Source of the DNA: Macrostomum hystrix
Taxonomy: Eukaryota; Animalia; Platyhelminthes
Reading direction: 5' to 3'
DNA: 64,000 nt
Assembly: GCA_950097015.1 (NCBI GenBank)
Contig: CATNEN010000030.1
Span: 1,116,001 to 1,180,000, forward strand
Position 1 is the stretch's first letter. The number at the start of each line of letters is the position of its first letter. The position numbers and the translations under genes were made by a program. The notes under the pieces were generated by a model, which saw nothing but the letters and a program-made list of their open reading frames with translations, did no database searches and was not told the DNA's origin. This document shows, piece by piece, positions 1,331-46,684 of the stretch.

Positions 1331-4300
1331 ATGAATCTTCACCTTGCTTGCAGAAACGGCAGCAGAGAGGCTGTGGAGGCGCTGCTGAAGTCGGGTGCAA
1401 ACCCGGACGCTCGCGACTCCATGGGACGGACGCCGCTGTGGGTGGCAAGCGAAAAAGGTTTCGTAGCTGCCATGGAGCCGCTGTTGAAAGCCGGGGCACA
1501 GGTGGATTGTGCACAGAGTGATGGAGCAACGCCAATTTTCGCGGCAGCACAAGGCGGTGGCGACGCAGCAGTGGCGAAGCTGCTGGATGCGGGTGCGAAT
1601 CCGAACATCCGGCGTCAGGATGGATGCGGGCCATTGCTGATCGCTACACAGACGGGACACGCGGGTGTCGTTTGTTGCCTGCTGGATGCTGGAGCTGAGG
1701 TCAACCTGAGACGGGGGGACAACTCGTCACCACTGCTGATATCGGCTCAATACGGGCAACAGAGTGTGCTAGAGATGCTACTAAATTCGGGACCTGATCT
1801 TCATCTACCGAACAGGAACGGCTCAGGCCCGCTCTATGCAGCCTGCTGTTTCGGCTACACTGCCGCAGTAAAAAAGCTGCACCTGGCTGGAGCTGAGGTC
1901 AACCAATGGAATAGCCTCGGCCTCACGCCTCTGCACAAAGGATCAGAGAACGGACACTCGGAGCTGGTGAATCTGCTGATCGAAATCGGAGCCCAAGTCG
2001 ACGCCCGAGATAACGTTAGAGCTACTCCGCTTCACTTAGCCGCCGAGAACGGACACGCGACTGTCGCACAGACTCTGGTGCGGGCGGATGCGTCTGTGAA
2101 TGCTCAGGACGATGCCGGAGACTCTCCGCTTCACAGAGCAGCGAGGAGAGGGCACGAGAAAGTAGTCTCCGTGCTTGTAACAGCCGGTGCCGACGTGAAC
2201 CTAGAGAACAATGCGGGCGACACTCCGCTAACTGTAGCAGCTGGCCACTGTACCAACTCTGAGATTCTCAGCCTTCTAGTGCCTAACTCATTGACCAAAA
2301 ATATCGAAATGGGATTGACAGCCGCTTTTTTCTTTGGACTCGAAGAAAATGCCCTACAATTGCTAAGCATGCTCAACATGGACGCGAAAGCTCTCCGGCG
2401 CATTTTACCGAGCTCTTGCGCCCAACTGGCCACCGAGTGTCTGCGTCGCATCACTACGCGTATTCGACGCCGATCCAGCTCACCATCATTTTCATTAGCT
2501 GATGTAGAGTAGGTGGTTCTATAATTAAATGATATGACAAGCACAATTCGCCACAATAACTTGAAAAAACAGGGCTTTAAAGTCCATGCAATTTATTCAG
2601 ACTCGAGCAGCCCAACAGCCAGTTCAGCGAGCAGTTGTCCGAGGCCCTCAGGCACGCCGGGTTCACCAGAGAAGGCGCAATCGCTCAGCAGGCCCAGGCG
2701 GACATACTCCAGGACATCGTCCGAAGGATCAAACCAAACATCTGCATCAATGTTGTCGGCAGTTTCAGTGAAGGCTGGGGAAGCTCATTGAAGAGCCTGG
2801 ATGGTCAGATTGACGAAGACTCTGACATCGACTACACCGAGATTCTGCCAGTTGAGCTGCACATAGCTGATTATTGCAAGTGCCAATCGCCAGATCCAGA
2901 TAACCTGCTCAGCTATGAAGGAGGATATTCTCGATTCCGAACAGCAGGCAAGTTTCTTATCGACCAATTGCAATTATATAGACCTGAGTAAAATGTGTAG
3001 ACTTGGATATGCTGCAGAGTAGACTGTGGCGAAGTTTTCCTGGTGGTATCTCGGCTTGACCATAGACAATATTTAAGATCATTGAACCCCCTGCCCATAC
3101 AATTTCAGCCACGAACCCGAGCAATCCCCAGCTGAGGACGTTGCAGTCGCCTGCCATGGACTATGTCAACGCACTGCGCACCTGCTGCTACCCAGACATT
3201 CCTGCCTTGGCTCCTGGTCGACCTACACACATTCCCCCTGAGCTGCTTAAACAACTGAGGTTCGAGCTCCAACATTCATTGTGCCACCTCGTCCGAGCGG
3301 CGCCTCCCGGCAAAGAGGGCGAGTGGCTCCGGCTGAGCACGACCTTCCTGGAGAGGCGGATGATCCGAGGATTCAACACAGAGCAGGGCCAGCTGTTCGT
3401 CATCCTGAAGTTCCTCATCAAGCGACACCTCTCCAACACGGTGAGCGGACTCAAGACCTACGTGGCCAAGACTCTCTTGTTCCGCATGGTGGACGAGACT
3501 CCGGCGAGTGATTGGCGAGCCGACAATCTGCTGCAGCTGACCAGGCGAGCTCTGCAGATTCTGCTCGACGGCCTGCAGCAGGGCGGAGAGCACGAGTGCC
3601 TGCGACATTTCTTTGCTCCCAGGGCCGCCGTGTATCTGCGCAGCGGCCACTCGGCAAAGAGCGACGTCATTGAGGCCGTGAGGAGCAGCATGAACGACCT
3701 GCGGCAGCCTCTGATGAAACTCATGGAACAGTTGGTACCGATCAGCGACTCGACTTTCGCGCCATTTCACCCATTTACTATGACACCTGCCATATATGAT
3801 CTGCATTCCTTAAGCTCTAATATTGACTTGCTGGACCTATATCACGTTGTGTGGACTGTTTTTCGAGACTTGGCAGGTGACTCTTTTCCGTCTATTTCGC
3901 TAATCGAATGCATCCCGGAGTTTGCGTTCTCAGCCCGAGAGAGCCTTAAAGCCATGGCTCAACTGAAGTTGGGCCAGAAAGATGCTGCTCTGCAAACGCT
4001 TAAAGCTGCCGTGCATCACAAAGTGAGCAAATGGGCTGTCAAGGCCCAGCAGAATGTGACAGTGGGGGTGGTGACTGCTGAGTTATGGCTTAAGTTCAAG
4101 AACAGTGACGCCAACTATCGCTTCTGCTTCCGCTACGACAGGCGACCCGAGCTGAAGTTCCTGTCTGAGTTAGCAAGAATCAACTTTCCTCTGAAAATGT
4201 TGTTCTACGCCAATAGGTTCTATATGAACTTCGATGCTTTACTTAAGTGGCTCTGCTTGGAGCTCATTCCGACGGACGCCCTGGTTCCATCCAGACGTTG

Positions 4301-5723
4301 GTTTGACGACTTGCTTCACGAGCCGCATGTCGACGTCCCCGACCTTGCGCTGGCTTTGCGCTTCTGCACAGACGCGGGCATTCTGGCCAGAATCATTCAT
4401 CGAGAAAGGAGCGTCATCGCCACCTTGCCGTCTGTTCGGCAGATGCTGGAGGACTGCATGCGTCGACTTGTGAGTTCAAAAGTTAAATGGCTCTCTTGAA
4501 AATATATACAGAACCTGCTTGGAGCGCTTAGTTTGACATAAACTAGTCAATATGGAAGGAGATGCTGGCTTAAACATTGCAAGATAATTTTAATCATATA
4601 TCCTTCAACCAAGAATGTCCTCTAAGTCACGCACCGATGCCGGCGAGGAATGCTGCGAATGTGGCGGTCTAGTCGCTGCTGTGGAATTCGTTGTAATTTT
4701 CCTGCTAGCTCAGCACAGCACCTTGCTGCTGCTCCCAATGTTGACCTTAATGGGTTTAAGTTCTGGCCTAATCGGCACGTCAAATAGCACAGCTCGCCTG
4801 CTCAAGTCATATGTAGCATCGGTTTGGTCACACAGCCTCTGTGCACCAGGGCATTGTCCAGCTGCAGGACGGTGCCAACAACTAGGTTTATCAGCGGTTT
4901 CATAAAACGGCTGCAGCAATTCTGAACAATTAATTGAGTTGACAAATCTCTCTTGCGCAGAACTAGCTCGCTACGATTCCAAGTTCAAATGGCTCATTGA
5001 CGTGAGCCAAGGTGCAGCCTGATTGGCCGGCCATTCCCTAGAAAGCGCTCCTGCAACCCTACGATGTTCCAGGTTGTCATAGTTTGAAGAAGATAATGGC
5101 TGTGTGATTCACGAACCCCCTTTGATTCAGTAAACACCAACGCTTTCTAGCAGGGTGATTTTTATGAGTATTTAGGGCAGTTTATATCAGCAGGGGGTCG
5201 GTGGCAGAGCGGTTAACGCGTTTGCCTCTCGCACCAATGTCCCTAAGCTCAATTCCGCGGCGAGACATTTTTTTGAGGCGCAGCCACGGAGCTTGTCGTG
5301 CAATTACTGCCTTTGAGGGCCAAATCCAAGGCAGAGTGAAAGTGTACACTGCCTGACGATGAGAAAGTCGCAGCAGATGTATAATACATCCCTGTGTGAG
5401 CGTGTGCCTGCGTACAGTATCTGAGTGCGTGTGTGCTCAGGAGTCAGCGAAATGGGCAGAATTGCCTCCTCGCAGGCTGCGGGTCTAGTGTCACAAAATG
5501 GTGCACCATTACCCACAGCCCTCCTGGAATTATTATTTTGTTAGTATTGTTTCAGCAGCCTTTACACCTGCACCCACTGCAGCCCAATCTGAAGGAGTGC
5601 TGCATCCGTCGGACACTGATGGTCGTGAGTCGCCAGTTGCGCCTGGACACGCGCTGCAGGCGAAGGCGGAGGCGAAGCGGCCGTTTACGCGAGATGCCAC
5701 CTGAGCTACCCTGTGGCAGGTGA
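1331..5723 (+). CDS. Ankyrin-repeat / Mab-21 (cGAS-like receptor, cGLR) fusion gene, copy 1; predicted exons 1331-2508, 2601-2947, 3109-4469, 5583-5723 (~1008 aa)
   Basis: ~10 ankyrin repeats (TPLHxAAxxGH pattern). Donor GA|GTAGGT (2509) to acceptor TTTATTCAG| (2600) keeps frame. Exon 2 has the NTase motif VVGSFSEG...DSDID. AG|GCAAGT (2948) to TTTCAG| (3108) keeps frame. Exon 3 has Mab-21 motifs DYVNAL, RLSTTFLER, LKTYVAKTLLF, CLRHFF. CTT|GTGAGT (4470) to GCAG| (5582) keeps frame into a terminal exon that the paralog also has. Total length 3027 nt is divisible by 3. Confidence 0.85.
4620..4880 (-). mobile_element. Highly decayed Tc1/mariner transposase remnant within intron 3 of cGLR copy 1
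   Basis: Minus-strand fragments in different frames read VLQLDNALVHR (cf. FQQDNAPxH), NLNPL (cf. DLNPIE) and RIPQQRLDRHIRSIPRRHRCV (cf. Tc1 C-terminus IPxxxIxxLIxSMPRRC); stops and frameshifts present; no TIRs seen. Confidence 0.45.
5193..5540 (+). mobile_element. tRNA-derived SINE, family A (near full-length copy)
   Basis: Head GGGGGTCGGTGGCAGAGCGG (A-box-like) ... GCTCAATTCC (B-box-like); body GTACACTGCCTGACGATGAGAAAGTC...GTGCTCAGGAGTCAGCGAAATGGGC is shared with copies at ~41035-41410 and ~61310-61490. Confidence 0.75.
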
Positions 5724-8152
5724 AGAGAGCGACTGAAATAAAATAGTTTGACAAACTCCGCCGTGTTACTAAATGGTCAAAGACAAATTATGGAAAATAA
5801 TTACTGTTTATCAGTAAATCAAGTCAAGTAAGTCTGTTGGATTGAATGATCAGACAGCCAATCAGATTTTGTGGATGGAGTGACTTCTTAGACAATAGGA
5901 TTTGCAAGATGTTAGTCTTATCAGTTTTTTGTATAGAATTAGAAAATCAATGGCCAAAGAGGCCATTTCCGCTCTTTTTTCGTTTCTTTGAAATCCTTAA
6001 AAACTCAAAATCGCTTTGTGATTTGATGATTGCTAGTAGTTTAATAATTTGATATCATTTTATGTAAAAAAGATTAGATTTTGAAAATCTGAGCACTTTA
6101 AATTATGTCAAATTATTTTCATTTCAGGCCAACATGCTTTCACATTACAGTCACATTACTATTCTTTTACATGTGCAAGCCCTTTTGAGAATAAAGATTT
6201 TCATTAATTCCATTTTGAAAACTTGAACACAGAAGCAAAAGAAAACAGAAAATTGTAAAGTTCTTCTTTGTCGGCTTATGATAGAAATTTGTTACTGTAT
6301 TTTATAAGAAATACAGATTTATAAATCTATATTTCTGTATCAATATCTAGACGTCGCCAGGGCACTCGTATATGATTTGAGCGTGGGCCTGCGTTGGGTT
6401 CTTTTAGTCAGAAAAAGTCAAACTTGACAGTTGAGCAGCGGGGAATTGCCCCCCCACACTGAATTTTTTTGTGCTGCACCCGAACGGAACAACGCAAGCA
6501 CACGAACTAGCTCTTCAGACAGTCGAGATATTCAATGTTTCCGGCCGAAGGTCAAATTTTTCCCATAAGAGCTAGTGTATTTGATACACCCATATACACA
6601 GATTAGCACTGCGCCTCAGTGCAGCCTTGCCAGGCCTTCAAAATTTATCAGCATGTCACCCGAATGTGGCTGCATCACCTCCATCATCGGTGGCACCTAC
6701 CTTTATCTAGACGGATTTGCTGGACCTTCAAAGGCTACAACAGGTAGAAATAGGCCACAACGGACACCCTGACACGAATTTCTCCAATTTCACTGATCAA
6801 GCCTAAATATTAGGCGCAGCTCAACCACAGGACACCATCGCATAGTCTGTCAACCAATCAGTCATCACCCAACACTGTTAGCATTCAGGCGCTGCCAAAA
6901 AAGGATCAGGGGGTGAATTCCACTTGGTATAAAAACGGGCGGCAAAATGGCTTGGCAGTCCTACAGTTAACACGTTGGATGATCTTCAAACAGTTGTTTT
7001 AATTCTAGAAGACAAGAAAATACATTTAACAAATACAAAGACCTAAAAAAATTTTGTTTATCAAATTGAGTATTTCTTTTATTTTTTTACGCATTCTGCA
7101 GATGTATAAATCTGTATAATCCATCGGAAAAAACTAATCTAAACGGGGTAATCAACCTGACAATATGCATGACCGCACCGACAATACATGGAATGAAGCA
7201 TAAAAAGCGGAATAGTTATATAAACTAAAGTACAAAGAATAAAGCAAACAAATTATTTCTATGATCAAGTAGCAATGAACTATACACATGAACAAAACAT
7301 TGGCTTCATGACCAAAAGCGAAAAATCCGATTTCGGTTATTTTCCATCAATCAGAAGGGTCGGATCTGGCAAAATGCGATCGCACATCACCTGCCACAGG
7401 GCAGCTCAGGTGGCATCTCACGTAAACGGCCGCTTCGCCTCCGCCTTCGCCTGTAGCGCGTGTCCAGGCGCAACTGGCGACTCATGACCATCAGCGTCCG
7501 ACGGATGCAGCACTCCTTCAGATTGGGCTGCGGAAGGGCACGCAGTTCGTAAAGCAAGACAAGTATTTTTTTTACCAATAATACAACTGAAAATGCGGAG
7601 GTAAAAAAGTAGCCAGGTAACTGCTAAGCTAACGAACATTGCAGCAGAATAAGTCGTCAGACAGGAATTCCCTGCCATCATTTATCTACTTACAGTAGCA
7701 GATGCGTTCTAATAACAGCCTTACTTAGTAGCTATTAATATTACCTCTCCCTAATTTCTTTACGTGAGGGCTCACCAGGCGACGCATGCAGTCCTCCAGC
7801 ATCTGCCGAACAGACGGCAAGTTGGCGATGACGCTCCTTTCTCGATGAATGATACTGGCCAGAATGCCCGCGTCTGTGCAGAAGCGCAAAGCCAGCGCAA
7901 GGTCGGGGACGTCGACATGCGGCGCGAAAAGCAAGTCGTCAAACCAACGATGTAAATCGACTTGCGCTTCCTCTGGAGCGAGCTCGAGAAAGAGACTTTT
8001 TAGAAAAGCGTCAAAGTTCATGTAGAAGCGGTTGCCGTAGAATTGCATAGGCAGAGGAAAATTGTCCCTTGTAAACTGCGGTAGAAACTTCAGATCGGGC
8101 CGCCTGTCGTAGCGGAGAGTGAACCGGTAGTTTGCGTCACTACTGGTTTGAT

Positions 8153-8413
8153 TGTAACCGTCTTAAAGGCTACAACTAAGAAAGGCAGATGTTTGCAGTG
8201 GAACGTAAGATAGGACGTTATGCCTTAGCGGTCTCGCCCGGCTAAGACTTCTGGGCTTGAGTGACTGTATTTATGTGTCAGCATTAACCATAGACAAGAG
8301 GATATTATATGCGCTCTATATTAGGGGCTTTGCTCTAAAGTCTAAGTAACAAGTATGTAAGTTAACGGTGCTGAAGCTTAATATCGCTTGAAACTAGAAC
8401 TGCTGCTGCTACA
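8153..8413 (-). repeat. 3' LTR (261 bp)
   Basis: TGTAACCG...GCTACA; matches 12496..12756; preceded on the minus strand by the polypurine tract. Confidence 0.97.
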
Positions 8414-8417
8414 AATA

Positions 8418-8428
8418 CCCCCCCTCCC
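8418..8428 (-). promoter_or_regulatory. Polypurine tract (GGGAGGGGGGG)
   Basis: Purine run 4 nt upstream of the 3' LTR on the minus strand. Confidence 0.85.
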
Positions 8429-8547
8429 AAAGGCAGGTAAGGGGATAACTCATGAAGCATATAGGATCATAAGCAATGTCAAGCAAACACACCTGCGCGC
8501 GATAGGGAGCAAACGTCAGTGTCAATGGGGTACAATTTACGCATAGT

Positions 8548-11500
8548 TCAAGTGAAAGTGACGCGGCGGGGTCTCAACCGTGAACGCATAGAGTCCTCCG
8601 CATCGGTGGTGATGGGAGGCATTTCGCACTGTGGGCTCGGCAGCCGTGCTGGCTTCACGCGGTCGATGGTCACGTTCGTTGGCGTCCCCCGGATGTCGAG
8701 GGTGAATGTAATTGGTGACCTGTGCAGTACGCGAAACGGACCCTGGTAAGGTGCTTCTAGCGGCTTCCGTACGCGGTCGAGACGGAGCCAGGCGTGGCTG
8801 CAGTCTTCCAGGTTGCCCGGAAGGTGTGTCGGCGTTTGTCGTGTGCGCGGCAAACGGTAGGGGTAGAAAAGGTTGTGGAAGCGATCGGATAGTTGGTGCA
8901 GGCTTGAATCGTCTGTTACTACTGGAGGCACGATTGGTTGCTCGCCGGTCACTCCGGAAAAACGGGCAGTGTCCAGCGTCGTCCGGCTGAATCCGCAGTC
9001 CGAGTAGCACAATTGGCAGTTGTTCAAGCCAACAGCGTCCTCGAGCCCGAAGGGCAGCCTTCAGCGAGCGGTGTGCTCGCTCGACCAGGCCGTTGGCTCG
9101 GGGGTTGTACGCTGAGGTTCTGATGTGATGGATGCCGAACAGCTTGGTAAGTTCTGCCATGAGCTCGGCGCGGAACTGGGCACCCTGGTCCGTGATGAGC
9201 GTCAGAGGTGGACCGAAGCGAGACACCCAGGCGCTGAGGAATCCACGGGCGACGGACGCGGCGGAGATGTCGATCAGCGGGACGGCCTCCAACCAACGCG
9301 TGTAGGCGTCGATGATTGTAAGTAGGTAGCGTGGTAGTTGTCGACCATCAGCTTCCGGGGGCGTTAATGGCCCGACGATATCCATGTGTACCGCTGTGAA
9401 TCGCTGAGAGGGTGTTGGTAGCTGATCTAGTGGTCGGCGCACATGCTGAGTGACTTTGTTGGCTTGGCACTGCTGGCATTCTTCTGCCCAACGGCGCACG
9501 TCGCGCGACATCTCGGACCAAAAGTAGCGGTGGCTGATCAATCGGCAGCTAGCCTTGACACCAGGATGGGCTAATGAATGAATCGATGTAAAGATGTGCT
9601 TTCGCAACTCCGGTGGCACGACTGGCCGCGGATTGGGGTACGATGTCTCACAGAGTAGTTGGCAGTCAGTCAGTCCGATGTCAAAGAGCTTGAAAGCGTC
9701 GGACTCCGGTGTCGGCGTTGAATCCAACTGTTGTGCGCGTGCAATTGCCGGTAGGTCAATGCTGGGTAACGCATGCGTGGTTTCGTCTGTCGGGACTATC
9801 TCCTGTGCGGCGGCGACCAGCGCCTCGGATGTTGAGCTGTTTTCGCGGTCTTTTGAGGGCCGTGACAGTGCGTCGGCGACGACGTTGGCTTTGCCGGCAA
9901 TGTGAACAATGTCCGTGACGATCTCGGAGATTGCCGACATTTGGCGCTGCTGTCTGTCGGAGAAGCGTTCCTTGTTGCTTGCGAAGGCGCCGATAATTGG
10001 CTTGTGGTCGCAGAACACCGTCACCGTCTGGCCTTGAAGCAGATGTTTCCAAGCTTTGATGGCGGCGAAGATAGCGAGTAGCTCCCGATCGAAGGTGCTG
10101 TACGCAGCTTCGGTGTCGGAGAGCTTCCTTGAGAGAAAGGCGAGAGGCGTAGAGTCACCGTCTACTACCTGGTGCAGGCAGGCTCCGAGGGCCATAGAGC
10201 TGGCGTCTGTCGTTACTGTGAAGTTGGCTCGAGGGTGAGGAAAGGCGAGTGTGACGGAGTCGGCGAGTGCGTCTTGCAGGGAACGCCATGCCAGGTCATG
10301 CTCTGGGAGCCAATCGAAGGTGTTGTGCAGAAGTCGTCGCAGCGGGAGCAGTAGTTGCGCGTAGTGCGGAATGTGGCGCTGATAAAAGCCGAACATGCCG
10401 AGGTAGCGCTGTAGCTCCTTGCTGTCCTTGGGCGTCGGGAGGGCTCGTAGGGCGCTCACTCGATCAGGCAGTGGTCGGATCCCGTCTCCGGAAATCTGAT
10501 GACCTAAGAACTCAATGGTGTCCTGGTAGAATTGACATTTGTGAGGGCTCACTCGCAGGCCGGTATCGCTCAGGCGTTGAAGTACGGCATGCAGATGTGC
10601 ATCGTGGTCCTCACGGCCGGCGCTGTGGATCAGAATGTCATCGATGTAGGTGACGACGAATGGCATGTCGCGGAAAATGGAGTCGACAAATCGTTGAAAA
10701 GTGCTAGCTGCGTTGCGCAGGCCGAACGGCATGCGTAGATACTCAAACGAGCCGAATGGCGTGCAGACTGTAGTTTTCTCGATGTCCTCCTCGGCAATGG
10801 GCACGAAGTGGTAGGCCTTGACCAGGTCAAGCTTGCTGAACACTCGTGCGTTGTGGAGTCGATGATGAAAATGACCGATGTGTGGTATCGGGTAGCGATC
10901 TGGCTTGGTCACTGCATTGAGTGCGCGGTAGTCTCCACAGGGGCGCCACGAGCCGTCCTTCTTCTTCACCATGTGGAGAGGGGACGCCCATGGGCTGGCG
11001 GCGGGTCGCACGATGCCAAGACGGAGAAGCTGGTCGAACTCCGCCTTTGCTGCGTCGAACTTGGCTGGAGGGAGTGGGCGGGGGCGGCAGAAAAGCGGCT
11101 TGCTGTCGGTGATGATCTGGTGACTGACTGTGCTTGACGAAGGAGCAGACGAATAGTCTGGGGCTTCTGCTAGTTGTGGGAAAGCGTCGAGAGGTGTTGC
11201 TAGCACTGACGATGTAGCTAGTACGCGCGGTGCTACTTCCGCTGCTGCATGGAGAGAGGCATTGAGCTCCGTAGTCGGGTCATGCACCCGCTTGTTGCGC
11301 ATGTCGATCAGGAGACCGAACTTAGCTAGGAAGTCGGCTCCCAAAATCGGCGGTGTGTTAGTGACAATGAAGTTCGCAGAAAAGAGGCGGCGTAGATCCG
11401 GGACAGCGAGGGATAGCGAGCACTGGCCAAGAGTGTGGAATTCGCGACCATCAACGCTGCGTAGGCGGACTTGCGTGGGAGCCAGCAGGTGTCGAGGAGC

Positions 11501-11728
11501 GAGGTCCAACGGTAGTAGGGAGCGCTCGGCGCCGGTGTCCACAACGAAACGAACAGTTTTTCCGAACAACTTGCAGGGTAGTAACAGCGAAGAGGCCTCG
11601 TTGAGGTCATGGCTCGGCCCTGGCGCATGACCTACATGTTTGTTGGGCTGACGGCGCGCGACTGGGCCGGCGTAGCCTGGCGGCTGTTGAGCACACGCTG
11701 CGGCTTGGATTCGGGCCACTGGCACCAT
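8548..11728 (-). CDS. pol: Pol polyprotein (aspartic protease, RT, RNase H, integrase) with one apparent frameshift at ~8960
   Basis: VDTGAERS (protease), YIDDILI (RT), TTDASS (RNase H), HSLAH...CQQC (IN zinc finger), MDIVGP/TDQGAQF/NGLVER (DDE). The GPY/F tail [12 protein letters not shown] is in a different frame (ORF 8548..9027) after a T5 run. Confidence 0.93.
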
Positions 11729-12456
11729 GGTCGGCAGGTGCGAGCGTCTGCGCCGTAGTAGATGTGGGCGTTGCAGACCTTCTGTCTCTGTTGTCGAGGG
11801 CGTCGCTGCGGTCGAGCCTCTCGAGCACTTCCTTGGGGAGAGGCGGTGGGTGTCGCTGTGGCTCGCGCGATGGTGTGGAAAGGTGTCAGGGGACCGGCGA
11901 CTGCCAGCATGCTGTCGGCGATCTTGGCAAAATTGTCGAGCGCTTCAGACTCATGGCCGACGAGCGCTGAACGGATGTTGCCGGGAAGGGCGGAAAGCAG
12001 GCGAGATTTTACGATCGAGTCGTCTACCTGTAGTCCAACCTCTGTGAAGCGACGCCGGATGTCCGTAACCAGCTGCGTGGGGCGGCGATCACCGAGCTCG
12101 ACAGCTGCGAGCGCTTCTTCGATGCGCTGGTGGCGGTTGGCGCGAAGCATTTCCGTCACGGCCGCCTTCAGCGCTTCGTAGTTGTCTTCAACGTCCACCA
12201 TGTCACAGGCGACATCTTCTGGCAGCGCGGCCAGGGCGTGGTGGAACTTTGTCGTCGAGCAGGTAACGCGTGCTAAGATGAATTGGGATTCCAGCTGGCG
12301 GAACCATACGTCTGGCGCTTTTCGGTAGAAGGGAGCCGGGCGGACCGTGCCACGGTTGCCGGGCTCTTGGACAGTAGGTGTAGTGCTGGCTACGTCGGCG
12401 GAAGCAGAAGGGCCGTGGTTAGCCTCGGTTCGTCGTTGGTTTCGTTTGTTGGGCAT
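11632..12456 (-). CDS. gag: Gag protein (274 aa) with CHCC zinc knuckle
   Basis: [21 protein letters not shown]-terminal Gag motif; C-x2-H-x9-C-x3-C ([18 protein letters not shown]), the knuckle type described for CsRn1-clade elements. Confidence 0.9.
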
Positions 12457-12480
12457 CGCGGTATTGCAGCCTTGTCACAC

Positions 12481-12492
12481 GCTCTGCTACCA
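12481..12492 (-). promoter_or_regulatory. Primer-binding site, probably initiator tRNA-Met
   Basis: TGGTAGCAGAGC lies 3 nt inside the 5' LTR; its first 11 nt are complementary to the 3' end of metazoan tRNAiMet (...CUCUGCUACCA). Confidence 0.8.
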
Positions 12493-12495
12493 ATT

Positions 12496-12756
12496 TGTAA
12501 CCGTCTTAAAGGCTACAACTAAGAAAGGCAGATGTTTGCAGTGGAACGTAAGATAGGACGTTATGCCTTAGCGGTCTCGCCCGGCTAAGACTTCTGGGCT
12601 TGAGTGACTGTATTTATGTGTCAGCATTAACCATAGACAAGAGGATATTATATGCGCTCTATATTAGGGGCTTTGCTCTAAAGTCTAAGTAACAAGTATG
12701 TAAGTTAACGGTGCTGAAGCTTAATATCGCTTGAAACTAGAACTGCTGCTGCTACA
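12496..12756 (-). repeat. 5' LTR (261 bp)
   Basis: Matches 8153..8413; followed by the PBS on the minus strand. Confidence 0.97.
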
Positions 12757-14539
12757 TGATTTTGCATGGACACTGCTCTTGCGTCGAATAAGTTCGCATA
12801 AACCCTGTTCGGACCTCCATTCCTGACTCTGTGATGCGACGCTGCCTTCAATGTGAGGACAGCAGCTTCTCGCTGCTCCAATTTTAGCAGCGCCATTGCT
12901 CTAAAATTCTCTCGAACTGAGAACGCGCAGGCAGGGATTCGGTCGATGACTGATATTTGGGGACACGAATCGCTTCCTAAATCCATCAGCACAGTCCACA
13001 CAACTGGATATAGATCCAGCAAATTGATTTCTTTTTCGCCCTTCTCATTCGATTGAACCGAATGCAGATCATATATGGCAGGTGTCATAGTAAATGGGTG
13101 AAATGGCGCGAAAGTCGAGTCGCTGATCGGTACCAACTGTTCCATGAGTTTCATTAGAGGCTGCCGCAGGTCGTTCATGCTGCTCCTCACGGCCTCAATG
13201 ACGTCGCTCTTTGCCGAGTGGCCGCTGCGCAGATACACGGCGGCCCTGGGAGCAAAGAAATGTCGCAGGCACTCGTGCTCTCCGCCCTGCTGCAGGTCGT
13301 CGAGCAGAATCTGCAGAGCTCGCCTGGTCAGCTGCAGCAGATTGTCGGCTCGCCAATCACTCGCCGGAGTCTCGTCCACCATGCGGAACAAGAGAGTCTT
13401 GGCCACGTAGGTCTTGAGTCCGCTCACCGTGTTGGAGAGGTGTCGCTTGATGAGGAACTTCAGGATGACGAACAGCTGGCCCTGCTCTGTGTTGAATCCT
13501 CGGATCATCCGCCTCTCCAGGAAGGTCGTGCTCAGCCGGAGCCACTCGCCCTTTTTGCCGGGAGGCGCCGCTCGGACGAGGTGGCACAATGAATGTTGGA
13601 GCTCGAACCTCAGTTGTTTAAGCAGCTCAAGGGGAATGTGTGTAGGTCGACCAGGAGCCAAGGCAGGAATGTCTGGGTAGCAGCAGGTGCGCAGTGCGTT
13701 GACATAGTCCATGGCAGGCGACTGCAACGTCCTCAGCTGGGGATTGCTCGGGTTCGTGGCTGAAATTGTATGGGCAGGGGTTCAATGATCTTAAATATTG
13801 TCTATGGTCAAGCCGAGATACCACCAGGAAAACTTCGCCACAATCTACTCTGCAGCAAATCCAAGTCTACACATTTTACTCAGGTCTATATAATTGCAAT
13901 TGGTCGATAAGAAACTTGCCTGCTGTTCGGAATCGAGAATATCCTCCTTCATAGCTGAGCAGGTTATCTGGATCTGGCGATTGGCACTTGCAATAATCAG
14001 CTATGTGCAGCTCAACTGGCAGAATCTCGGTGTAGTCGATGTCAGAGTCTTCGTCAATCTGACCATCCAGGCTCTTCAATGAGCTTCCCCAGCCTTCACT
14101 GAAACTGCCGACAACATTGATGCAGATGTTTGGTTTGATCCTTCGGACGATGTCCTGGAGTATGTCCGCCTGGGCCTGCTGAGCGATTGCGCCTTCTCTG
14201 GTGAACCCGGCGTGCCTGAGGGCCTCGGACAACTGCTCGCTGAACCCTTCATCGGTCTGATAGATTCTGTTGTAAAATAATGTGGTAATAGGGCTGAAAA
14301 AATTCAAACCAAAGCAAGCAACAAGTTGTGATTTTTGGGGTTGAGTGAACGAGCGTCAACGCGTCCTTCTTTTGCACTTTAAGCTCGAATCGGCGGCGAG
14401 GCAAAATTCATTTCGGACGGAGACAAGAAGAGAAGGCTAGTGGGCTTGCGTATCTACTCAATAAGTAGACTACTAGTGCTCCTTAATGTGCAATTTATAC
14501 ACGTAATGGCCAACCCGTAAGTCTCAGTGAAAGTATTAA

Positions 14540-14690
14540 CTGCCTGAAAATACGACAGTCAGGGCAGATGTAGAAGCGTGTGTGTTAGTGTGTGCCCGTG
14601 AACGTAATTCGTGTGTGTGCGTGCGTTTGTGCTCAGGGGTGGGCTGAACGAGCAGGCAGAATTGCCTACTCGCTGGCTGCGGGTCGACAG
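14540..14690 (+). mobile_element. SINE family A, 3' half (diverged)
   Basis: GTCAGGGCAGATGTAG...GTGCTCAGGGGTGGGCTGAACG...GGCAGAATTGCCT...GGCTGCGGGTC matches the body of the 5193..5540 copy. Confidence 0.6.
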
Positions 14691-17600
14691 AATTCAAATG
14701 ATGCATCAGTGAACACAGCAGGGACATACACCGCAGCGGATGACTTTTGGCCGATCGAATGCGACCGCCGCGTGATTCGTCGAAGAGATTCGGTGGCTAT
14801 CTGGATGCAGGAGCTTGGCACTATTCGCCGGAGAGCTTTCGCGTCGACTTGAAGGCTGGCTAGCAGCTCCAATGCGTTATGTTCCAGCCCGAAACAGCAG
14901 GCGGATGTCACAGCTTGCTCAATGTGCTTTACCTTTGTGTCACGTAGCAGCAGTCTTAAAACACCAGCTTTAGAGCAGTTAGCTGCTGCTACGCTTAGCG
15001 GAGTGTCGCCCATATTGTTCTCTAGGTTCACGTCGGCACCGGCTGTTACAAGCACGGAGACTACTTTCTCGTGCCCTCTCCTCGCTGCTCTGTGAAGCGG
15101 AGAGTCTCCGGCATCGTCCTGAGCATTCACAGACGCATCCGCCCGCACCAGAGTCTGTGCGACAGTCGCGTGTCCGTTCTCGGCGGCTAAGTGAAGCGGA
15201 GTAGCTCTAACGTTATCTCGGGCGTCGACTTGGGCTCCGATTTCGATCAGAAACTGAACGAGATCAAGAAAGCCATTCTCAGAGCTCTTGTGAAGTGGTG
15301 TCAGACCCCGACAGTTCGATTGGTTGACCTCAGCGCCAGCCAGGTGCAGAATTTTTACTGCGGCAGTGTAGCCGAACCAGCAGGCTGCATAGAGCGGGCC
15401 AGAGCCGAATCTGTTGGGCAGGTGTGGATCGGCTCCATGGAGTAGCAGTATTTCTAGAACCTTCTGCTGGCCGTATTGAGCCGCTAGTAGTAGAGGGGAC
15501 GAGCCGTCATTTCTTTGTAGATTGACGTCGGCTCCGTAATCAAGTAAGCAGCGAACTACACTGGCATGTCCAGTCATAGACGCAATGAGTAGCGCCCCGG
15601 ATCCATCCTGACGCCGGATGTTCGGATTCGCACCTGCGTCCAGCAACTTCGCCACAACCGCATCGATACCGCCCTGTGCTGCAGCGAACATCGGGGTTGC
15701 TCCATCGTTCTGTGTGTAGTCTACCTGAGCACCAGCAATCAAGAGAGGCTCCAGAGCACCGACGTGACCATGATGGCTAACTACCCACAATGGCGTTTGG
15801 TTCGATGAATCGCGCGAGTCCGGGTTGGCTCCAGACTTCAGCAGAGACGCCACAAGCTCACGGTTGCCCGCTCGGCACGCAGCGTGAAGCTCTGTGTTCA
15901 AAGTTTCGCATGTCATTCTACTCGGTTTGACCGTGAGAAATCGATTGTTTTGCGCAATTTCGAGTGCCGCGCAACATTGTCTAGGTCTATTTACGATGCG
16001 TGCACGAGCGTATTGTACATTTATCTCTGACATTGGCTATGGCAATAGGCGATAACGTAAGCGATTCCCCCCACCCGCTTGGCGTAATGTCTAAAAATAG
16101 AACAAGACTTGCTCAGACAGTGTAATCTGCCCTTCTACGAGTAGCATTCACGGGCGAAACTTGTTTTTTATGAAGTTTCTCTCCGAGTAAATATTGTAAA
16201 AATGCAAAAAAAAGTTTTTTCGCAAGCACATTTTTGTGTTAGAAAAATAGTGTAAGTCAAGCGCATCCATAGTCCAACTCTCAAAATATTTGATTCAAAA
16301 ACGTGCTTTAGCTCGCGCAAACAAGCAATTTACCAAAAGCCAAACAACAAACAACTACAAAATGAAGGGAAGTTTTTGTGTCACTGCACTTTATTTTACA
16401 GAGGCCAACTATGCTATCTTGGGCCCAACCCGTACATTGACGAGGTCTGCGACCCCAGCACCCCACGGCTCAGTCCCACGGCCCCCAGCCGTTCTGTAGT
16501 ACTACCATCACTTGTCCCCCTCATACAGATGCTTAGGCATGATTTGGCATTTTATTGTGCAGTACAATCAACAGTGCTTCCATTGTAATTTGCCTGAAGC
16601 CAAAATGAAATATGAATCTAATGTAAACATGCGTTTAAAAAATCACTGATGTCACGGTGTGTTTTTTCGATAAGATATCTAGTACAACAAGCCCAACAAG
16701 CGCTGATAATCAGCAGTATAATACTTTATTGAGATACTCCATAAAGTTATGTTTAGTCACGTCGATTAGGGCAGTTTAAATTGGTACGAAAGCGAAAATG
16801 AAAGTGATAACGAGCTTTTGAGCAAGACGAATAATTTGATTTTGTTATGATGGTTCAAAATCAACAACGCTTCACCGAGAAATTGATTGTTTAATGATGT
16901 TTCGCAAGTCTAAACATATACTATTTGTTAGCTATAAGGAGTTCTATTTCGAAATTAAAACAAATTTAAACAACATTTTGCATTTAAATATATATATATA
17001 AGAAGTATTTAATGAGTAATGCAATGAGTAATACAATGAGTACTCAATTCAACAATACAATACGAACAATAAACATGACTATAAACTGTTCACATTGTTA
17101 TGGGACCTAAATTGTTTATTCCCTATATCGAAATGACTAGACTTGATTTACGACTTACGTCCCTTTGATTTAGAAGGTACAGTTTTCGATTTTTCCGTTG
17201 AAATTTAGGTCGTTCCTGCGCTTTACTTACAGCAACCGAAACTTGTTTAATGGACCGATCGCGTCTTCTCGACAAGTAACGCCGGACAGTCGACTTGGCC
17301 CCCTCTGCCCAGTAACAGACTTGATGTCGTCCAGCATGTGTCCACAATGCGATCGAGGCCGACAACCGACTGTGGCGCGACATCAGGTAAATCCGGTAAT
17401 GGCATTGAAAGATACTCCGTTAAAAGAGTCGGTCAACAAGTTTTCCGATGTATTAGAGGCAATTTTGGAATCAGTCGACAGTGAAACGTATAACATATAG
17501 TTATGTGCAAATCCTTTGCCTTGTACTACTTTTCGCTCCATAGTCTATGGCACAGCTTAGTTGATATCCAACCTCTGCATTTCGCTAATGCTTTTCACTC

Positions 17601-27873: not shown

Positions 27874-28039
27874 ATCAGAGCTCAGGTATTCGTATCAGAG
27901 CTCAGGTGTTCACATCAGAACTCAGGTATTCGAATCAGAGCTCAGGTATTCGAATCAGAGCTCAGGTATTCGTATCAGAGCTCAGGAATTTGAATCAGAG
28001 CTCAGGTATTTGTATCAGAGCTCAGGCATTCGTATCAGA
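27874..28039. repeat. 20-bp tandem repeat (ATCAGAGCTCAGGTATTCGT), ~8 copies
   Basis: Read directly from the sequence. Confidence 0.9.
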
Positions 28040-28602
28040 TAAAAACATATTCTATTGCAGACACTGATGGACAATTAAATTTCGTTAGGAGTCAGGAAAA
28101 CTAAACGATGGTTTACATTTTCAGACGGATTATTCTTTCGTTGAAAAAGAAGTAAAGGTAGAAACGTTTCCTGTAGCAGCTGGCCTACGATCCGGCACAG
28201 CGGGGTGCTGTTCTATTTCCTATTTGCTAAGTGCCAGAAGCTATTTGCAATTTGAACAGCAGCCAGTGTAACTAGCAGATCGGCGAAAGAAGAGCACCAT
28301 TTAGAAAAGAAGCAAATATAGTACACAGCAGAGACACAGGCCAGCGATATTTAAGTAAAGACACTGGCATCAGCAAAATAATTCTGTAGGCTCAAAATAG
28401 TTTGATTTTGCTGATTGAGTGCAGTAAGTTACTGGATCGGTAGCAATCGTTGCAGAATCTGCAAGCACAGCAAATAATAGTTGACAATCAACAGGTGCAA
28501 AAGCTAACACCTGCGAAAAAGCATGCAAAACTTTCTAATAAATTCAACGCAGATTCAAGTCGTTCTATAAGTCAGTACAAGTCACATCTGACAAGCTCAA
28601 GC

Positions 28603-31600
28603 ATGAGACTCATTCTGCTGGCTGCATGCACAGCGGTTCTCTGCACCCTTGTGGTAAGGCCTCAACTAGTTTTCCTCAATCTGAGATATAGGGGCACACG
28701 AGACGAATTCTATGCCCATCCTTGTCTCGATGTACCAAAAATAAACAACCATATTTGAATTTCAGCTATCAGCTCCGCCTCCAAATGCTGCAAGCAAGAT
28801 AAAGAAGCCTGCCGCCCAAGCTGCTACCAAGCCCGCTGCGCCCGCAGCGGCAGCGCACAAGCCTGCGAAGGCAGCAGAGCCCTGCAGGAGACCCGCAAGA
28901 AAAGAAAGCCGGGGACGACGCGACGAGAGACGAAGTCGTCACGACTCTCAAAGGCAAAACAGGCGCCACGGCAGACGATCCGACAGACGAGCCCGAAGAA
29001 GGCGCGATGTGAGACAGAGAAGCAACCGTCGTCGTGCTAGACGCAACCGCAGACGCTCCAACAGACGCTCAGCCAGACGTAACCGCAGACGCTCTGCCAG
29101 ACGCAACCGCAAGAGCCGCGATGTGAGAAAGAGAAGCAACCGTCGTCGTGCTAGACGCCACCGCAGACGCTCCAACAGACGCTCTGCCAGACGTAACCGC
29201 AGACGCTCTGCCAGACGCAACCGCAAGAGCCGCGATGTGAGAAGGAGAAGCAACCGTCGTCGTGCTAGACGCAACCGCAGACGCTCCAACAGACGCAACC
29301 GCAAGAGCCGCGATGTGAGAAAGAGAAGCAACCGTCGTCGTGCTAGACGCAACCGCAAGAGCCGCGATGTGAGAAAGCGAAGCAACCGTCGTCGTGCTAG
29401 ACGCAACCGCAGACGCTCCAACAGACGCTCTGCCAGACGTAACCGCAGACGCTCTGCCAGACGCAACCGCAAGAGCCGCGATGTGAGAAAGAGAAGCAAC
29501 CGTCGTCGTGCTAGACGCAACCGCAGACGCTCCAACAGACGCAACCGCAAGAGCCGCGATGTGAGAAAGAGAAGCAACCGTCGTCGTGCTAGACGCAACC
29601 GCAAGAGCCGCGATGTGAGAAAGAGAAGCAACCGTCGTCGTGCTAGACGCAACCGCAGACGCTCCAACAGACGCTCTGCCAGACGCAACCGCAAGAGCCG
29701 CGATGTGAGAAAGAGAAGCAACCGTCGTCGTGCTAGACGCAACCGCAGACGCTCTGCCAGACGCAACCGCAAGAGCCGCGATGTGAGAAGGAGAAGCAAC
29801 CGTCGTCGTGCTAGACGCAACCGCAGACGCTCCAACAGACGCAACCGCAAGAGCCGCGATGTGAGAAAGAGAAGCAACCGTCGTCGTGCTAGACGCAACC
29901 GCAAGAGCCGCGATGTGAGAAAGAGAAGCAACCGTCGTCGTGCTAGACGCAACCGCAGACGCTCCAACAGACGCTCTGCCAGACGTAACCGCAGACGCTC
30001 TGCCAGACGCAACCGCAAGAGCCGCGATGTGAGAAAGAGAAGCAACCGTCGTCGTGCTAGACGCAACCGCAGACGCTCCAACAGACGCAACCGCAAGAGC
30101 CGCGATGTGAGAAAGAGAAGCAACCGTCGTCGTGCTAGACGCAACCGCAAGAGCCGCGATGTGAGAAAGCGAAGCAACCGTCGTCGTGCTAGACGCAACC
30201 GCAGACGCTCCAACAGACGCTCTGCCAGACGCAACCGCAAGAGCCGCGATGTGAGAAAGAGAAGCAACCGTCGTCGTGCTAGACGCAACCGCAGACGCTC
30301 CAACAGACGCAACCGCAAGAGCCGCGATGTGAGAAAGAGAAGCAACCGTCGTCGTGCTAGACGCAACCGCAAGAGCCGCGATGTGAGAAAGCGAAGCAAC
30401 CGTCGTCGTGCTAGACGCAACCGCAGACGCTCCAACAGACGCTCTGCCAGACGTAACCGCAGACGCTCTGCCAGACGCAACCGCAAGAGCCGCGATGTGA
30501 GAAAGAGAAGCAACCGTCGTCGTGCTAGACGCAACCGCAGACGCTCCAACAGACGCAACCGCAAGAGCCGCGATGTGAGAAAGCGAAGCAACCGTCGTCG
30601 TGCTAGACGCAACCGCAAGAGCCGCGATGTGAGAAAGCGAAGCAACCGTCGTCGTGCTAGACGCAACCGCAGACGCTCCAACAGACGCTCTGCCAGACGC
30701 AACCGCAAGAGCCGCGATGTGAGAAAGAGAAGCAACCGTCGTCGTGCTAGACGCAACCGCAGACGCTCCAACAGACGCAACCGCAAGAGCCGCGATGTGA
30801 GAAAGAGAAGCAACCGTCGTCGTGCTAGACGCAAACCGCAGACGCTCCAACAGACGCAACCGCAAGAGCCGCGATGTGAGAAAGAGAAGCAACCGTCGTC
30901 GTGCTAGACGCAACCGCAAGAGCCGCGATGTGAGAAAGCGAAGCAACCGTCGTCGTGCTAGACGCAACCGCAGACGCTCCAACAGACGCTCTGCCAGACG
31001 CAACCGCAAGAGCCGCGATGTGAGAAAGCGAAGCAACCGTCGTCGTGCTAGACGCAACCGCAGACGCTCCAACAGACGCTCTGCCAGACGTAACCGCAGA
31101 CGCTCTGCCAGACGCAACCGCAAGAGCCGCGATGTGAGAAAGAGAAGCAACCGTCGTCGTGCTAGACGCAACCGCAGACGCTCCAACAGACGCAACCGCA
31201 AGAGCCGCGATGTGAGAAAGAGAAGCAACCGTCGTCGTGCTAGACGCAACCGCAAGAGCCGCGATGTGAGAAAGCGAAGCAAACCGTCGTCGTGCTAGAC
31301 GCAACCGCAGACGCTCCAACAGACGCTCTGCCAGACGCAAACGCAAGAGCCGCGATGTGAGAAAGAGAAGCAACCGTCGTCGTGCTAGACGCAACCGCAG
31401 ACGCTCCAACAGACGCAACCGCAAGAGCCGCGATGTGAGAAAGAGAAGCAACCGTCGTCGTGCTAGACGCAACCGCAGACGCTCCAACAGACGCAACCGC
31501 AAGAGCCGCGATGTGAGAAAGAGAAGCAACCGTCGTCGTGCTAGACGCAACCGCAGACGCTCCAACAGACGCAACCGCAAGAGCCGCGATGTGAGAAAGA

Positions 31601-34600
31601 GAAGCAACCGTCGTCGTGCTAGACGCAACCGCAGACGCTCCAACAGACGCTCTGCCAGACGCAACCGCAAGAGCCGCGATGTGAGAAAGAGAAGCAACCG
31701 TCGTCGTGCTAGACGCAACCGCAGACGCTCCAACAGACGCAACCGCAAGAGCCGCGATGTGAGAAAGAGAAGCAACCGTCGTCGTGCTAGACGCAACCGC
31801 AGACGCTCCAACAGACGCTCTGCCAGACGCAACCGCAAGAGCCGCGATGTGAGAAAGAGAAGCAACCGTCGTCGTGCTAGACGCAACCGCAGACGCTCCA
31901 ACAGACGCAACCGCAAGAGCCGCGATGTGAGAAAGCGAAGCAACCGTCGTCGTGCTAGACGCAACCGCAGACGCTCCAACAGACGCTCTGCCAGACGCAA
32001 CCGCAAGAGCCGCGATGTGAGAAAGAGAAGCAACCGTCGTCGTGCTAGACGCAACCGCAGACGCTCCAACAGACGAAACCGCAAGAGCCGCGATGTGAGA
32101 AAGAGAAGCAACCGTCGTCGTGCTAGACGCAACCGCAGACGCTCCAACAGACGCAACCGCAAGAGCCGCAATGTGAGAAAGAGAAGCAACCGTCGTCGTG
32201 CTAGACGCAACCGCAGACGCTCCAACAAGACGCTCTGCCAGACGCAACCGCAAGAGCCGCGATGTGAGAAAGAGAAGCAACCGTCGTCGTGCTAGACGCA
32301 ACCGCAGACGCTCCAACAGACGCTCTGCCAGACGTAACCGCAGACGCTCTGCCAGACGCAACCGCAAGAGCCGCGATGTGAGAAAGAGAAGCAACCGTCG
32401 TCGTGCTAGACGCAACCGCAGACGCTCCAACAGACGCAACCGCAAGAGCCGCGATGTGAGAAAGAGAAGCAACCGTCGTCGTGCTAGACGCAACCGCAAG
32501 AGCCGCGATGTGAGAAAGCGAAGCAACCGTCGTCGTGCTAGACGCAACCGCAGACGCTCCAACAGACGCTCTGCCAGACGTAACCGCAGACGCTCTGCCA
32601 GACGCAACCGCAAGAGCCGCGATGTGAGAAAGAGAAGCAACCGTCGTCGTGCTAGACGCAACCGCAGACGCTCCAACAGACGCAACCGCAAGAGCCGCGA
32701 TGTGAGAAAGAGAAGCAACCGTCGTCGTGCTAGACGCAACCGCAAGAGCCGCGATGTGAGAAAGCGAAGCAACCGTCGTCGTGCTAGACGCAACCGCAAG
32801 ACGCTCCAACAGACGCTCTGCCAGACGCAACCGCAAGAGCCGCGATGTGAGAAAGAGAAGCAACCGTCGTCGTGCTAGACGCAACCGCAGACGCTCCAAC
32901 AGACGCAACCGCAAGAGCCGCGATGTGAGAAGAGAAGCAACCGTCGTCGTGCTAGACGCAACCGCAGACGCTCCAACAGACGCAACCGCAAGAGCCGCGA
33001 TGTGAGAAAGAGAAGCAACCGTCGTCGTGCTAGACGCAACCGCAGACGCTCCAACAGACGCAACCGCAAGAGCCGCGATTGTGAGAAAGAGAAGCAACCG
33101 TCGTCGTGCTAGACGCAACCGCAGACGCTCCAACAGACGCAACCGCAAGAGCCGCGATGTGAGAAAGAGAAGCAACCGTCGTCGTGCTAGACGCAACCGC
33201 AGACGCTCCAAACAGACGCAACCGCAAGAGCCGCATGTGAGAAAGAGAAGCAACCGTCGTCCGTGCTAGACGCAACCGCAGACGCTCCAACAGACCGCAA
33301 CCGCAAGAGCCGCGATGTGAGAAAGAGAAGCAACCGTCGTCGTGCTAGACGCAACCGCAGACGCTCCAACAGACGCAACCGCAAGAGCCGCGATGTGAGA
33401 AAGAGAAGCAACCGTCGTCGTGCTAGACGCAACCGCAAGAGCCGCGATGTGAGAAAGCGAAGGCAACCGTCGTCGTGCTAGACGCAACCGCAGACGCTCC
33501 AACAGACGCTCTGCCAGACGCAACCGCAAGAGCCGCGATGTGAGAAAGAGAAGCAACCGTCGTCGTGCTAGACGCAACCGCAGACGCTCCAACAGACGCT
33601 CTGCCAGACGTAACCGCAGACGCTCTGCCAGACGCAACCGCAAGAGCCGCGATGTGAGAAAGAGAAGCAACCGTCGTCGTGCTAGACGCAACCGCAGACG
33701 CTCCAACAGACGCAACCGCAAGAGCCGCGATGTGAGAAAGAGAAGCAACCGTCGTCGTGCTAGACGCAACCGCAAGAGCCGCGATGTGAGAAAGCGAAGC
33801 AACCGTCGTCGTGCTAGACGCAACCGCAGACGCTCCAACAGACGCTCTGCCAGACGCAAACGCAAGAGCCGCGATGTGAGAAAGAGGAAGCAACCGTCGT
33901 CGTGCTAGACGCAACCGCAGACGCTCCAACAGACGCAACCGCAAGAGCCGCGATGTGAGAAAGAGAAGCAACCGTCGTCGTGCTAGACGCAACCGCAGAC
34001 GCTCCAACAGACGCAACCGCAAGAGCCGCGATGTGAGAAAGAGAAGCAACCGTCGTCGTGCTAGACGCAACCGCAAGAGCCGCGATGTGAGAAAGCGAAG
34101 CAACCGTCGTCGTGCTAGACGCAACCGCAGACGCTCCAACAGACGCTCTGCCAGACGTAACCGCAGACGCTCTGCCAGACGCAACCGCAAGAGCCGCGAT
34201 GTGAGAAAGAGAAGCAACCGTCGTCGTGCTAGACGCAACCGCAGACGCTCCAACAGACGCAACCGCAAGAGCCGCGATGTGAGAAAGAGAAGCAACCGTC
34301 GTCGTGCTAGACGCAACCGCAAGAGCCGCGATGTGAGAAAGCGAAGCAACCGTCGTCGTGCTAGACGCAACCGCAGACGCTCCAACAGACGCTCTGCCAG
34401 ACGCAACCGCAAGAGCCGCGATGTGAGAAAGAGAAGCAACCGTCGTCGTGCTAGACGCAACCGCAGACGCTCCAACAGACGCAACCGCAAGAGCCGCGAT
34501 GTGAGAAAGAGAAGCAACCGTCGTCGTGCTAGACGCAACCGCAGACGCTCAACAGACGCAACCGCAAGAGCCGCGATGTGAGAAAGAGAGCAACGTCGTC

Positions 34601-46288: not shown

Positions 46289-46684
46289 TCCAGTTCGTTC
46301 ATAGATTTTCGGACTGGCCATTGGGTCCATAGTTGAAGTGTAATACAAAGTCAATCATCAGTATACCACCCCAGCCTAACTGTGCAGGTGTACAATACAC
46401 TAAGCTTTTCACATCGGTAATGAATGGATCGCGCAGATGTTAATTAGCGGTCCTTCCACATGCGATTCCGGTACTGCAGATCCCATAACTGACTGCAAAA
46501 GGAAGTGAAACTGCTAATTTCACAAATCCTGAAAAATATAATAATTGCTCATCGTTGAGTAGCATAACTACGGAGGACGCGTGCAAATTGTAGACTGAGT
46601 CGAATCCGCCATAGCCTAGTGGGGAAGAGGAAATTGCTTCCTGACAAGTACGCATCCTCCTTTTTCTAGCCGCGAATAATCCCC

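Follow-up and report, generated by a model that had tools for sequence, protein, structure and literature searches.

The closest described counterparts of the genes considered here are the ankyrin-fused cGAS-like receptors (ANK-cGLRs) of the flatworm Macrostomum lignano, catalogued by Li et al. (2023; bioRxiv 10.1101/2023.02.22.529553, PMC9980059). In that preprint, ANK-cGLR is named among the domain layouts of cGAS-like receptors (cGLRs), most platyhelminths are stated to be without cGLRs, Table S2 includes M. lignano proteins with Ank_2 (e.g., PAA67649.1 and PAA58690.1), and Table S3 has five M. lignano cGLR entries, PAA86972.1 and PAA45980.1 among them, that were cloned for a screen. That screen used constructs that began with the enzyme domain and offered them a pool of nucleic acids as ligands; nucleic-acid-sensing cGLRs were associated with an isoelectric point (pI) above 8.5. 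A search of the post-2023 literature on the function of flatworm or ankyrin cGLRs yielded only a review in addition to the 2023 catalogue. Here, we describe a 64,000-nucleotide stretch of the Macrostomum hystrix genome (GenBank assembly GCA_950097015.1, contig CATNEN010000030.1, positions 1,116,001 to 1,180,000 of the forward strand; below, "the window" is this whole stretch, and positions are counted from its first nucleotide). It holds two genes with the same layout as the M. lignano ANK-cGLRs, i.e., ankyrin repeats N-terminal to a cGLR domain: gene A, at 1331-5723 on the plus strand, and gene B, at 16033-7387 on the minus strand, which has the same exon order and faces gene A tail-to-tail. 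The architecture has been on record for Macrostomum since 2023, and A and B are additional members; what is specific to this locus is a copy broken by a retrotransposon, a gene conversion mosaic, a GC-AG intron, and a TPR-like tail. Li et al. describe neither a C-terminal TPR-like domain nor the pairing of the two genes, their conversion mosaic, or the retrotransposon insertion. We consider it likely that A and B are old paralogues of the Macrostomum ANK-cGLR family and that their products would carry out synthesis of a nucleotide second messenger under the putative control of the ankyrins, the tail, or both.

An earlier note on this DNA had proposed that three ORFs (open reading frames) of the plus strand splice in frame into one protein of about 1008 amino acids with some 10 ankyrin repeats, a Mab-21/nucleotidyltransferase (NTase) domain with an intact catalytic signature, and a helical tail, and the gene model holds up on each of these points. 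The ORFs lie at 1331-2512, 2635-2991, and 3141-4499, and four exons joined at 2508/2601, 2947/3109, and 4469/5583 give an open frame of 1008 codons that ends with a TGA at 5721-5723. Inspection of the sequence placed a GT after 2508, a GC after 2947 (CAG/GCAAGT), and a GTGAGT after 4469, with AG acceptors before 2601, 3109, and 5583. Exon 1 (1331-2508) carries the start codon, an array of 10 ankyrin repeats of 33 residues each, in register (amino acids 1-328; Pfam Ank and Ank_2, the latter with an E value of 4e-70, and 4.5e-59 for the gene B ankyrins), and a linker. The predicted intron 1 that follows (2509-2600; GT..AG, phase 2) leaves an in-frame join; the product of exons 1 to 3 forms single colinear BLAST segments with M. 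lignano proteins across both internal junctions. Exon 2 (2601-2947) encodes the NTase N-lobe, with G446-S447 at 2758-2763 and D468-I-D470 at 2824-2832, and is separated by a GC..AG intron of 161 nt (2948-3108) from exon 3 (3109-4469), which encodes the third catalytic Asp, D526 (3159-3161), a cGAS-type C-lobe (Mab-21_C), and a TPR-like helical tail (3708-4469). After intron 3 (4470-5582; GTGAGT..AG), exon 4 (5583-5723) adds a 46-amino-acid arginine-rich end (pI of 11.7) and the stop codon. Exon 4 is recognized by its 96.6% similarity between A and B, the limits of which are the acceptor AG (similarity resumes 4 nt ahead of it) and the stop codon; three of the five differences are synonymous in phase 0. 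Another reading frame of this exon (Q-S-E-G...) was rejected on the same grounds, as conservation between A and B extends precisely to the phase-0 stop codon and no farther. A contig carrying the five variants of gene B aligns to the equivalent stretch of gene A from 5582, compared with 5579 expected of unspliced gene B DNA, so that the junction at 4469/5583 is supported, although only indirectly. Intron 3 also holds a high-copy repeat (~5190-5500), the start of which looks tRNA-like; it is represented by dozens of contigs per run, with summed depths in the thousands, in the public runs described below, and ARAGORN called no tRNA in it.

In the active site of gene A, G446-S447 and D468-I-D470-Y are followed by 53 residues and then by M-D526-Y, and gene B is identical here. 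The arrangement fits the motif [DE]h[DE]h X50-90 h[DE]h by which cGLRs were defined by Li et al. (2023). Most of 31 diverged homologues retain the catalytic residues, as do A and B, and some family members (P0037, P0047, P0067, and P0080) have lost the acidic residues. Mab-21_C (PF20266) matches exon 3 barely above the cutoff, with 26.5 bits for gene A and 27.4 bits for gene B against a threshold of 24.1. The enzyme is flanked on both sides by repeat-type domains, i.e., by the ankyrin array and by the tail.

The fold of the enzyme was examined with a homologue, residues 535-1146 of the M. lignano protein P0007 (enzyme plus tail; 37% identical to gene A over 579 amino acids by BLAST), modeled with the family alignment. 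The AlphaFold2 model has a mean predicted local distance difference test score (pLDDT) of 91 and a predicted template modeling score of 0.91. Foldseek placed oyster Cv-cGLR1 at the top, followed by cGAS entries and human MB21D2 (E of ~3e-7, probability of 1.00). Aligned with human cGAS by VIA-align, the model gave a Z score of 20.0 with a root mean square deviation of 3.5 Å over 271 residues, and its residues 24-358 cover the entire catalytic domain of cGAS (162-521). As in the cGAS fold, the GS follows the first strand, the long second strand starts with the D-x-D, and strand 146-155 carries the third Asp. Model residues 360-612 fall outside every structural match. Compared across human and mouse cGAS and oyster Cv-cGLR1 (PDB 7ftu, 4k9b, and 8gjw), the catalytic-domain fold is common (Z scores of 18.8-20.0 over ~270 residues), as are the layout of the GS and acidic triad and the RLS..E motif of the C-lobe; in contrast, sequence identity is only 14-19%, the enzyme domain of the window proteins is near-neutral rather than basic, and these proteins are extended N-terminally by an ankyrin array and C-terminally by a helical domain of ~250 amino acids. 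A profile built from 31 family members and the window's own pieces and run against PDB matched mouse cGAS (E of 1.8e-6) and Drosophila cGLR1 (E of 3e-5), in the C-lobe only, including the RLS..E motif. Taken with the place of the Macrostomum family in the published cGLR catalogue, the fold match of the family member and the C-lobe matches of the profile support membership in the cGLR family. For the tail we modeled gene A itself (3708-4469, 254 amino acids; pLDDT of 85), which gave a helical-repeat domain plus a small sheet. No specific relative of this domain emerged: the best E value by Foldseek against PDB was 0.67, VIA-align over 48,161 chains gave at best a Z score of 7.5 to generic helical repeats, and in the ESM Atlas the template modeling scores to TPR proteins were 0.41-0.49. 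The modeled tail, which is specific to this family, is best called TPR-like, with no closer assignment.

An exhaustive HMMER search with exon 3 as the query returned 167 cluster representatives, 52 of them at E < 1e-30. All 13 of the matches below this threshold that were looked up by name were from M. lignano, and the bivalve proteins that were looked up had E values of 1.8e-11 or weaker. Among 40 homologues scanned, ankyrin repeats were found in 31 and Mab-21_C in 33, with 31 of the 40 combining both. The cluster of PAA45980.1, one of the entries cloned in 2023, is among the matches (P0046/P0163), and the N-lobe motif of another, PAA86972.1 (GSFAEAWGN..DADVDV), matches that of the window genes. 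Because the best identity of A and B to public proteins is 36-63%, both are absent from public protein sets; they are probably members from a sister species or unannotated paralogues. Two predicted M. lignano proteins, P0063 (PAA59752.1) and P0167 (PAA80948.1), combine a cGLR-family region and ankyrins with a C-terminal caspase domain (Peptidase_C14, E of 2e-25), which may mean that sensor and effector are fused directly or that separate gene models were merged. The design of a cGLR core with an appended protein-interaction module is also seen in a cGLR fusion from another phylum (2023, Fig. 4C), and the two may have arisen independently.

Transcript evidence was drawn from contigs of four public runs of a single study, which we read as RNA because their contigs cover exons and skip intron 2 and because intron 1, intron 3, and the upstream flank are empty. 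Each of the four runs has contigs in which 161 nt are missing at 2944/3106, a joint with 3 nt of slack; this corresponds exactly to removal of the GC-AG intron at 2948-3108 and confirms the second of the junctions that had been singled out for checking (2947/3109). Intron 2 has the GC donor CAG/GCAAGT in both genes (2948-3108 and 13760-13919) and is excised precisely in the public contigs. Ankyrin exon parts specific to gene A (1378-1558, 1670-1826, and 2197-2347) are covered by contigs with zero or one difference. Gene A is transcribed, at low depth, since these near-exact contigs sit where A and B are only 62-69% identical. For gene B, a contig of 1361 nt (X4-21) spans exon 2 and extends into the ankyrin exon on one side and into exon 3 on the other. 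The possibility that it represents a third paralogue, given its 92% identity to gene A, was ruled out, as all of the 21 listed variants in its ankyrin part match gene B. Contigs from a paralogue that is neither A nor B were seen separately (runs X1-X4; contigs of 1184-1471 nt on 3578-3751, 4119-4162, and 4245-4276); this third paralogue has a higher depth than A or B, and its locus lies outside the 64-kb window.

Contig X4-21 also bears on the structure of gene B. It holds 276 nt between gene B positions 14985 and 14245, which implies an intron of 463 nt. Exon 1 of gene B (14730-16033) encodes a 46-amino-acid N-terminal extension, 10 ankyrin repeats, and a linker, and its end at 14730 (donor GTATGT) is deduced from that gap; intron 1 (14267-14729; GT..AG, 463 nt) is likewise deduced from lengths rather than read. 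Among the sites inspected by eye, 14730/GTATGT...ACAACAG/14266 is the only in-frame GT-AG pair of fitting length. An alternative in-frame pair, 14670/14293, predicts 363 nt where the contig has 276 nt, whereas 14730/14266 fits exactly. The junction between ankyrins and enzyme in gene B is thus supported by length, the junction itself not having been read. Exon 2 (13920-14266) encodes the NTase N-lobe, the protein being identical to that of gene A from FSEQL onward, and intron 2 (13760-13919) has the GC donor.

The earlier note had described gene B as a minus-strand paralogue with the same exon structure. The paralogue exists and its exon order is the same; the note had overlooked, however, that its exon 3 is split by a long terminal repeat (LTR) retrotransposon of 4604 bp (8153-12756, minus strand). 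The first part of the exon (12757-13759) runs up to the insertion site, and the second part (7776-8148), which encodes the rest of the helical tail, continues its frame once the element and one copy of the target duplication are removed; intron 3 (7528-7775) and exon 4 (7387-7527), with the basic end and the stop codon, complete the gene. The two LTRs (8153-8413 and 12496-12756) are 261 bp long, 100% identical, and end in TG..CA, and the element is flanked by a duplicated 4-bp target site (ATCA on the minus strand) at 12757-12760 and 8149-8152. Between the LTRs are a gag ORF (12456-11632) that carries DUF7041 and a pol ORF of 1063 amino acids (11728-8537) with protease, reverse transcriptase, RNase H, and integrase in that order (Pfam matches to RVT_1, RT_RNaseH_2, Integrase_H2C2, rve, and an aspartyl protease). 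Termini, duplication length, and the order of gag and pol domains match those of Ty3/Gypsy-type LTR retrotransposons, and the element is Ty3/Gypsy-like in its domain order. Because its LTRs are identical, the insertion must be very young, and it is possibly polymorphic; the element is apparently intact and probably comes from a family recently active in this genome. Without the element and one duplication copy, gene B has 1055 open codons. In the assembly, its frame is cut off at 901 codons, ~884 of its own plus 17 from the LTR, and ~170 residues of the tail are lost.

Comparison of the two genes along their length confirmed that they differ mainly in the N-terminal ankyrins and in the post-catalytic region. 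A main tract of 99.4% identity joins A 2622-3808 to B 14245-13060 and includes intron 2, in which A and B differ at only three positions. Smaller near-identical tracts were found at ~2011-2210 (100%; ankyrin repeats 8 and 9), at 4334-4433 (98%; tail), and at 5579-5723 (96.6%; exon 4), and the flanks of the tracts have a nucleotide identity of 62-75%. The rate of synonymous substitution (dS) is 0.012-0.016 in the core, whereas the ankyrins have a dS of 0.62, the tail one of 0.85, and the linker one of 1.97, and the ratio of nonsynonymous to synonymous rates (dN/dS) in the diverged parts is 0.20-0.27. We read the near-identical tracts as patchy gene conversion superimposed on an old duplication. 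Since the main tract runs straight through intron 2, the near-identity of the enzyme core is attributed to conversion rather than to selection for a shared enzyme. The diverged parts, judged by their dN/dS, are under purifying selection. The pattern of like enzymes with unlike sensors in the earlier note is real, but it is not a mark of diversifying selection. Differences between the ankyrin arrays fall at 21 of 59 residues in the six canonical binding positions and at 53 of 269 elsewhere (odds ratio of 2.25, Fisher P of 0.015), a modest enrichment that is suggestive but weak.

In the scheme that we favor, the enzyme would stay inactive as long as no ligand is bound at the ankyrin groove, at the helical tail, or at both. 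Once activated, it would make a cyclic or linear nucleotide second messenger from nucleoside triphosphates by means of the Asp triad, and this signal would be read by STING-type receptors. The calculated pI of the enzyme domain is 6.8 in A and 7.8 in B, that of the ankyrin array is 5.6 and 6.1, and that of the exon 4 end is 11.7. A near-neutral enzyme and acidic ankyrins argue against a basic, cGAS-like nucleic-acid groove as the only sensor, and a ligand other than nucleic acid is plausible because the enzyme pI of 6.8-7.8 compares with the values above 8.5 that Li et al. (2023) associate with nucleic-acid-sensing cGLRs. The basic end encoded by exon 4 could itself bind nucleic acid; this peptide is not conserved in other family members. 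A more far-reaching form of the scheme would have the ankyrin groove and the TPR-like tail gate the cGAS-like enzyme in the manner of NLR-like sensors of protein or other non-nucleic-acid ligands, with conversion keeping the core uniform while the sensors drift and with the signal feeding STING receptors. In all its parts together, this form is speculative, and we hold it to be rather unlikely.

Other explanations account for some of the same observations. A and B could be noncatalytic scaffolds of the Mab21L type, in which the cGAS-like fold is only a structural support for the repeat domains on either side and produces no nucleotide signal. The loss of acidic residues in P0037, P0047, P0067, and P0080 would fit such a role, as would the failure of the Pfam NTase-core model to match and the fact that none of the M. 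lignano members cloned in 2023 is among the named actives of that screen. However, the GS, the D-x-D, and the third Asp are retained in the large majority of the 31 diverged homologues and in A and B, and inactivity in the screen is weak evidence, since its constructs consisted of the enzyme domain only and its ligands were nucleic acids. The outcome of the screen is compatible with enzymes that require their flanking domains or a different ligand, and it also fits a noncatalytic role; all told, we regard scaffolds of this kind as improbable. cGAS and OAS have both the fold and the catalytic triad in common, and the type of product is not told apart by sequence or structure. For that reason, A and B might be active enzymes and yet not cyclic-dinucleotide synthases of a STING pathway, making linear 2'-5' oligonucleotides as OAS does or feeding another signal or effector, e.g., one linked to caspases. 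That M. lignano family members are predicted to have a caspase domain in the same chain and that most flatworms lack cGLR-STING would agree with this, but the best structural and sequence matches are to cGAS, cGLRs, and MB21D2, with no OAS entry in the top 50, and we consider it distinctly improbable. Finally, the locus could be decaying, with both copies pseudogenes or transcribed relics, as might be suspected from the retrotransposon in gene B and from a family so large that it has redundancy to spare. Against this stand the 1008-codon open frame of gene A over four exons, the frame of gene B (open apart from the insertion), the dN/dS of 0.20-0.27 in the diverged parts, the contigs of both genes in the public runs, and the identical LTRs, which make the insertion very young and possibly polymorphic; decay of both copies is hardly credible.

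Our preferred reading of A and B as gated second-messenger synthases has several observations to contend with as well. The Pfam search that the earlier note had called for recovered Ank_2 and Mab-21_C but not the NTase-core family Mab-21 (PF03281), which matches neither the exon 2 pieces nor any of the 40 full-length homologues; the exon 2 pieces alone matched no Pfam family. The fold test was made on a homologue that is 37% identical and not on gene A's own spliced protein. The type of the four public runs is absent from their record, so that their RNA status is taken from the missing introns, and the exon 1/2 and exon 3/4 junctions of gene A are not read directly by contigs: none in the public runs covers 2508/2601, and the depth is zero across 2466-2617. 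That the ankyrin and tail domains act as sensors is only our inference, and the proposal in the earlier note that the ankyrins sense protein ligands or take the place of the nucleic-acid-binding surface is equally conjectural. Lastly, no enzymatic activity is known for any member of this family; in Li et al. (2023; PMC9980059), the active-enzyme column is empty in the two M. lignano rows of Table S3 that were checked, and the 15 actives are placed in insects, anemones, molluscs, hydras, and corals, with no flatworm among them.

Elsewhere in the window, an ORF at 47-445 resembles the C-terminal portion of a reverse transcriptase from a non-LTR retrotransposon. By composition only, 28000-36000 stands out as a long stretch with a GC content of 0.59 and an AT skew of about +0.5. 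Strand asymmetry is extreme at 46000-52000, where the GC skew is -0.7 to -0.9 and the AT skew is -0.4 to -0.7, a composition suggestive of a pyrimidine-rich low-complexity or satellite block.

Most flatworms and nematodes are without cGLR-STING immunity, and Macrostomum is an exception, with dozens of ankyrin-fused cGLRs. To this family, the locus contributes one intact member with a clean gene model that has RNA support, and it shows how the family evolves, namely, through old duplicates, patchwork conversion, and disruption by active retrotransposons. It leaves what is known about the function of the family unchanged; its value is that of a well-annotated candidate for biochemistry on the full-length protein rather than on the isolated enzyme domain. 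If A and B do act as gated sensors that signal to STING, they would form part of a complete and expanded cGLR-STING system in flatworms, a phylum from which such systems are thought to have mostly disappeared.

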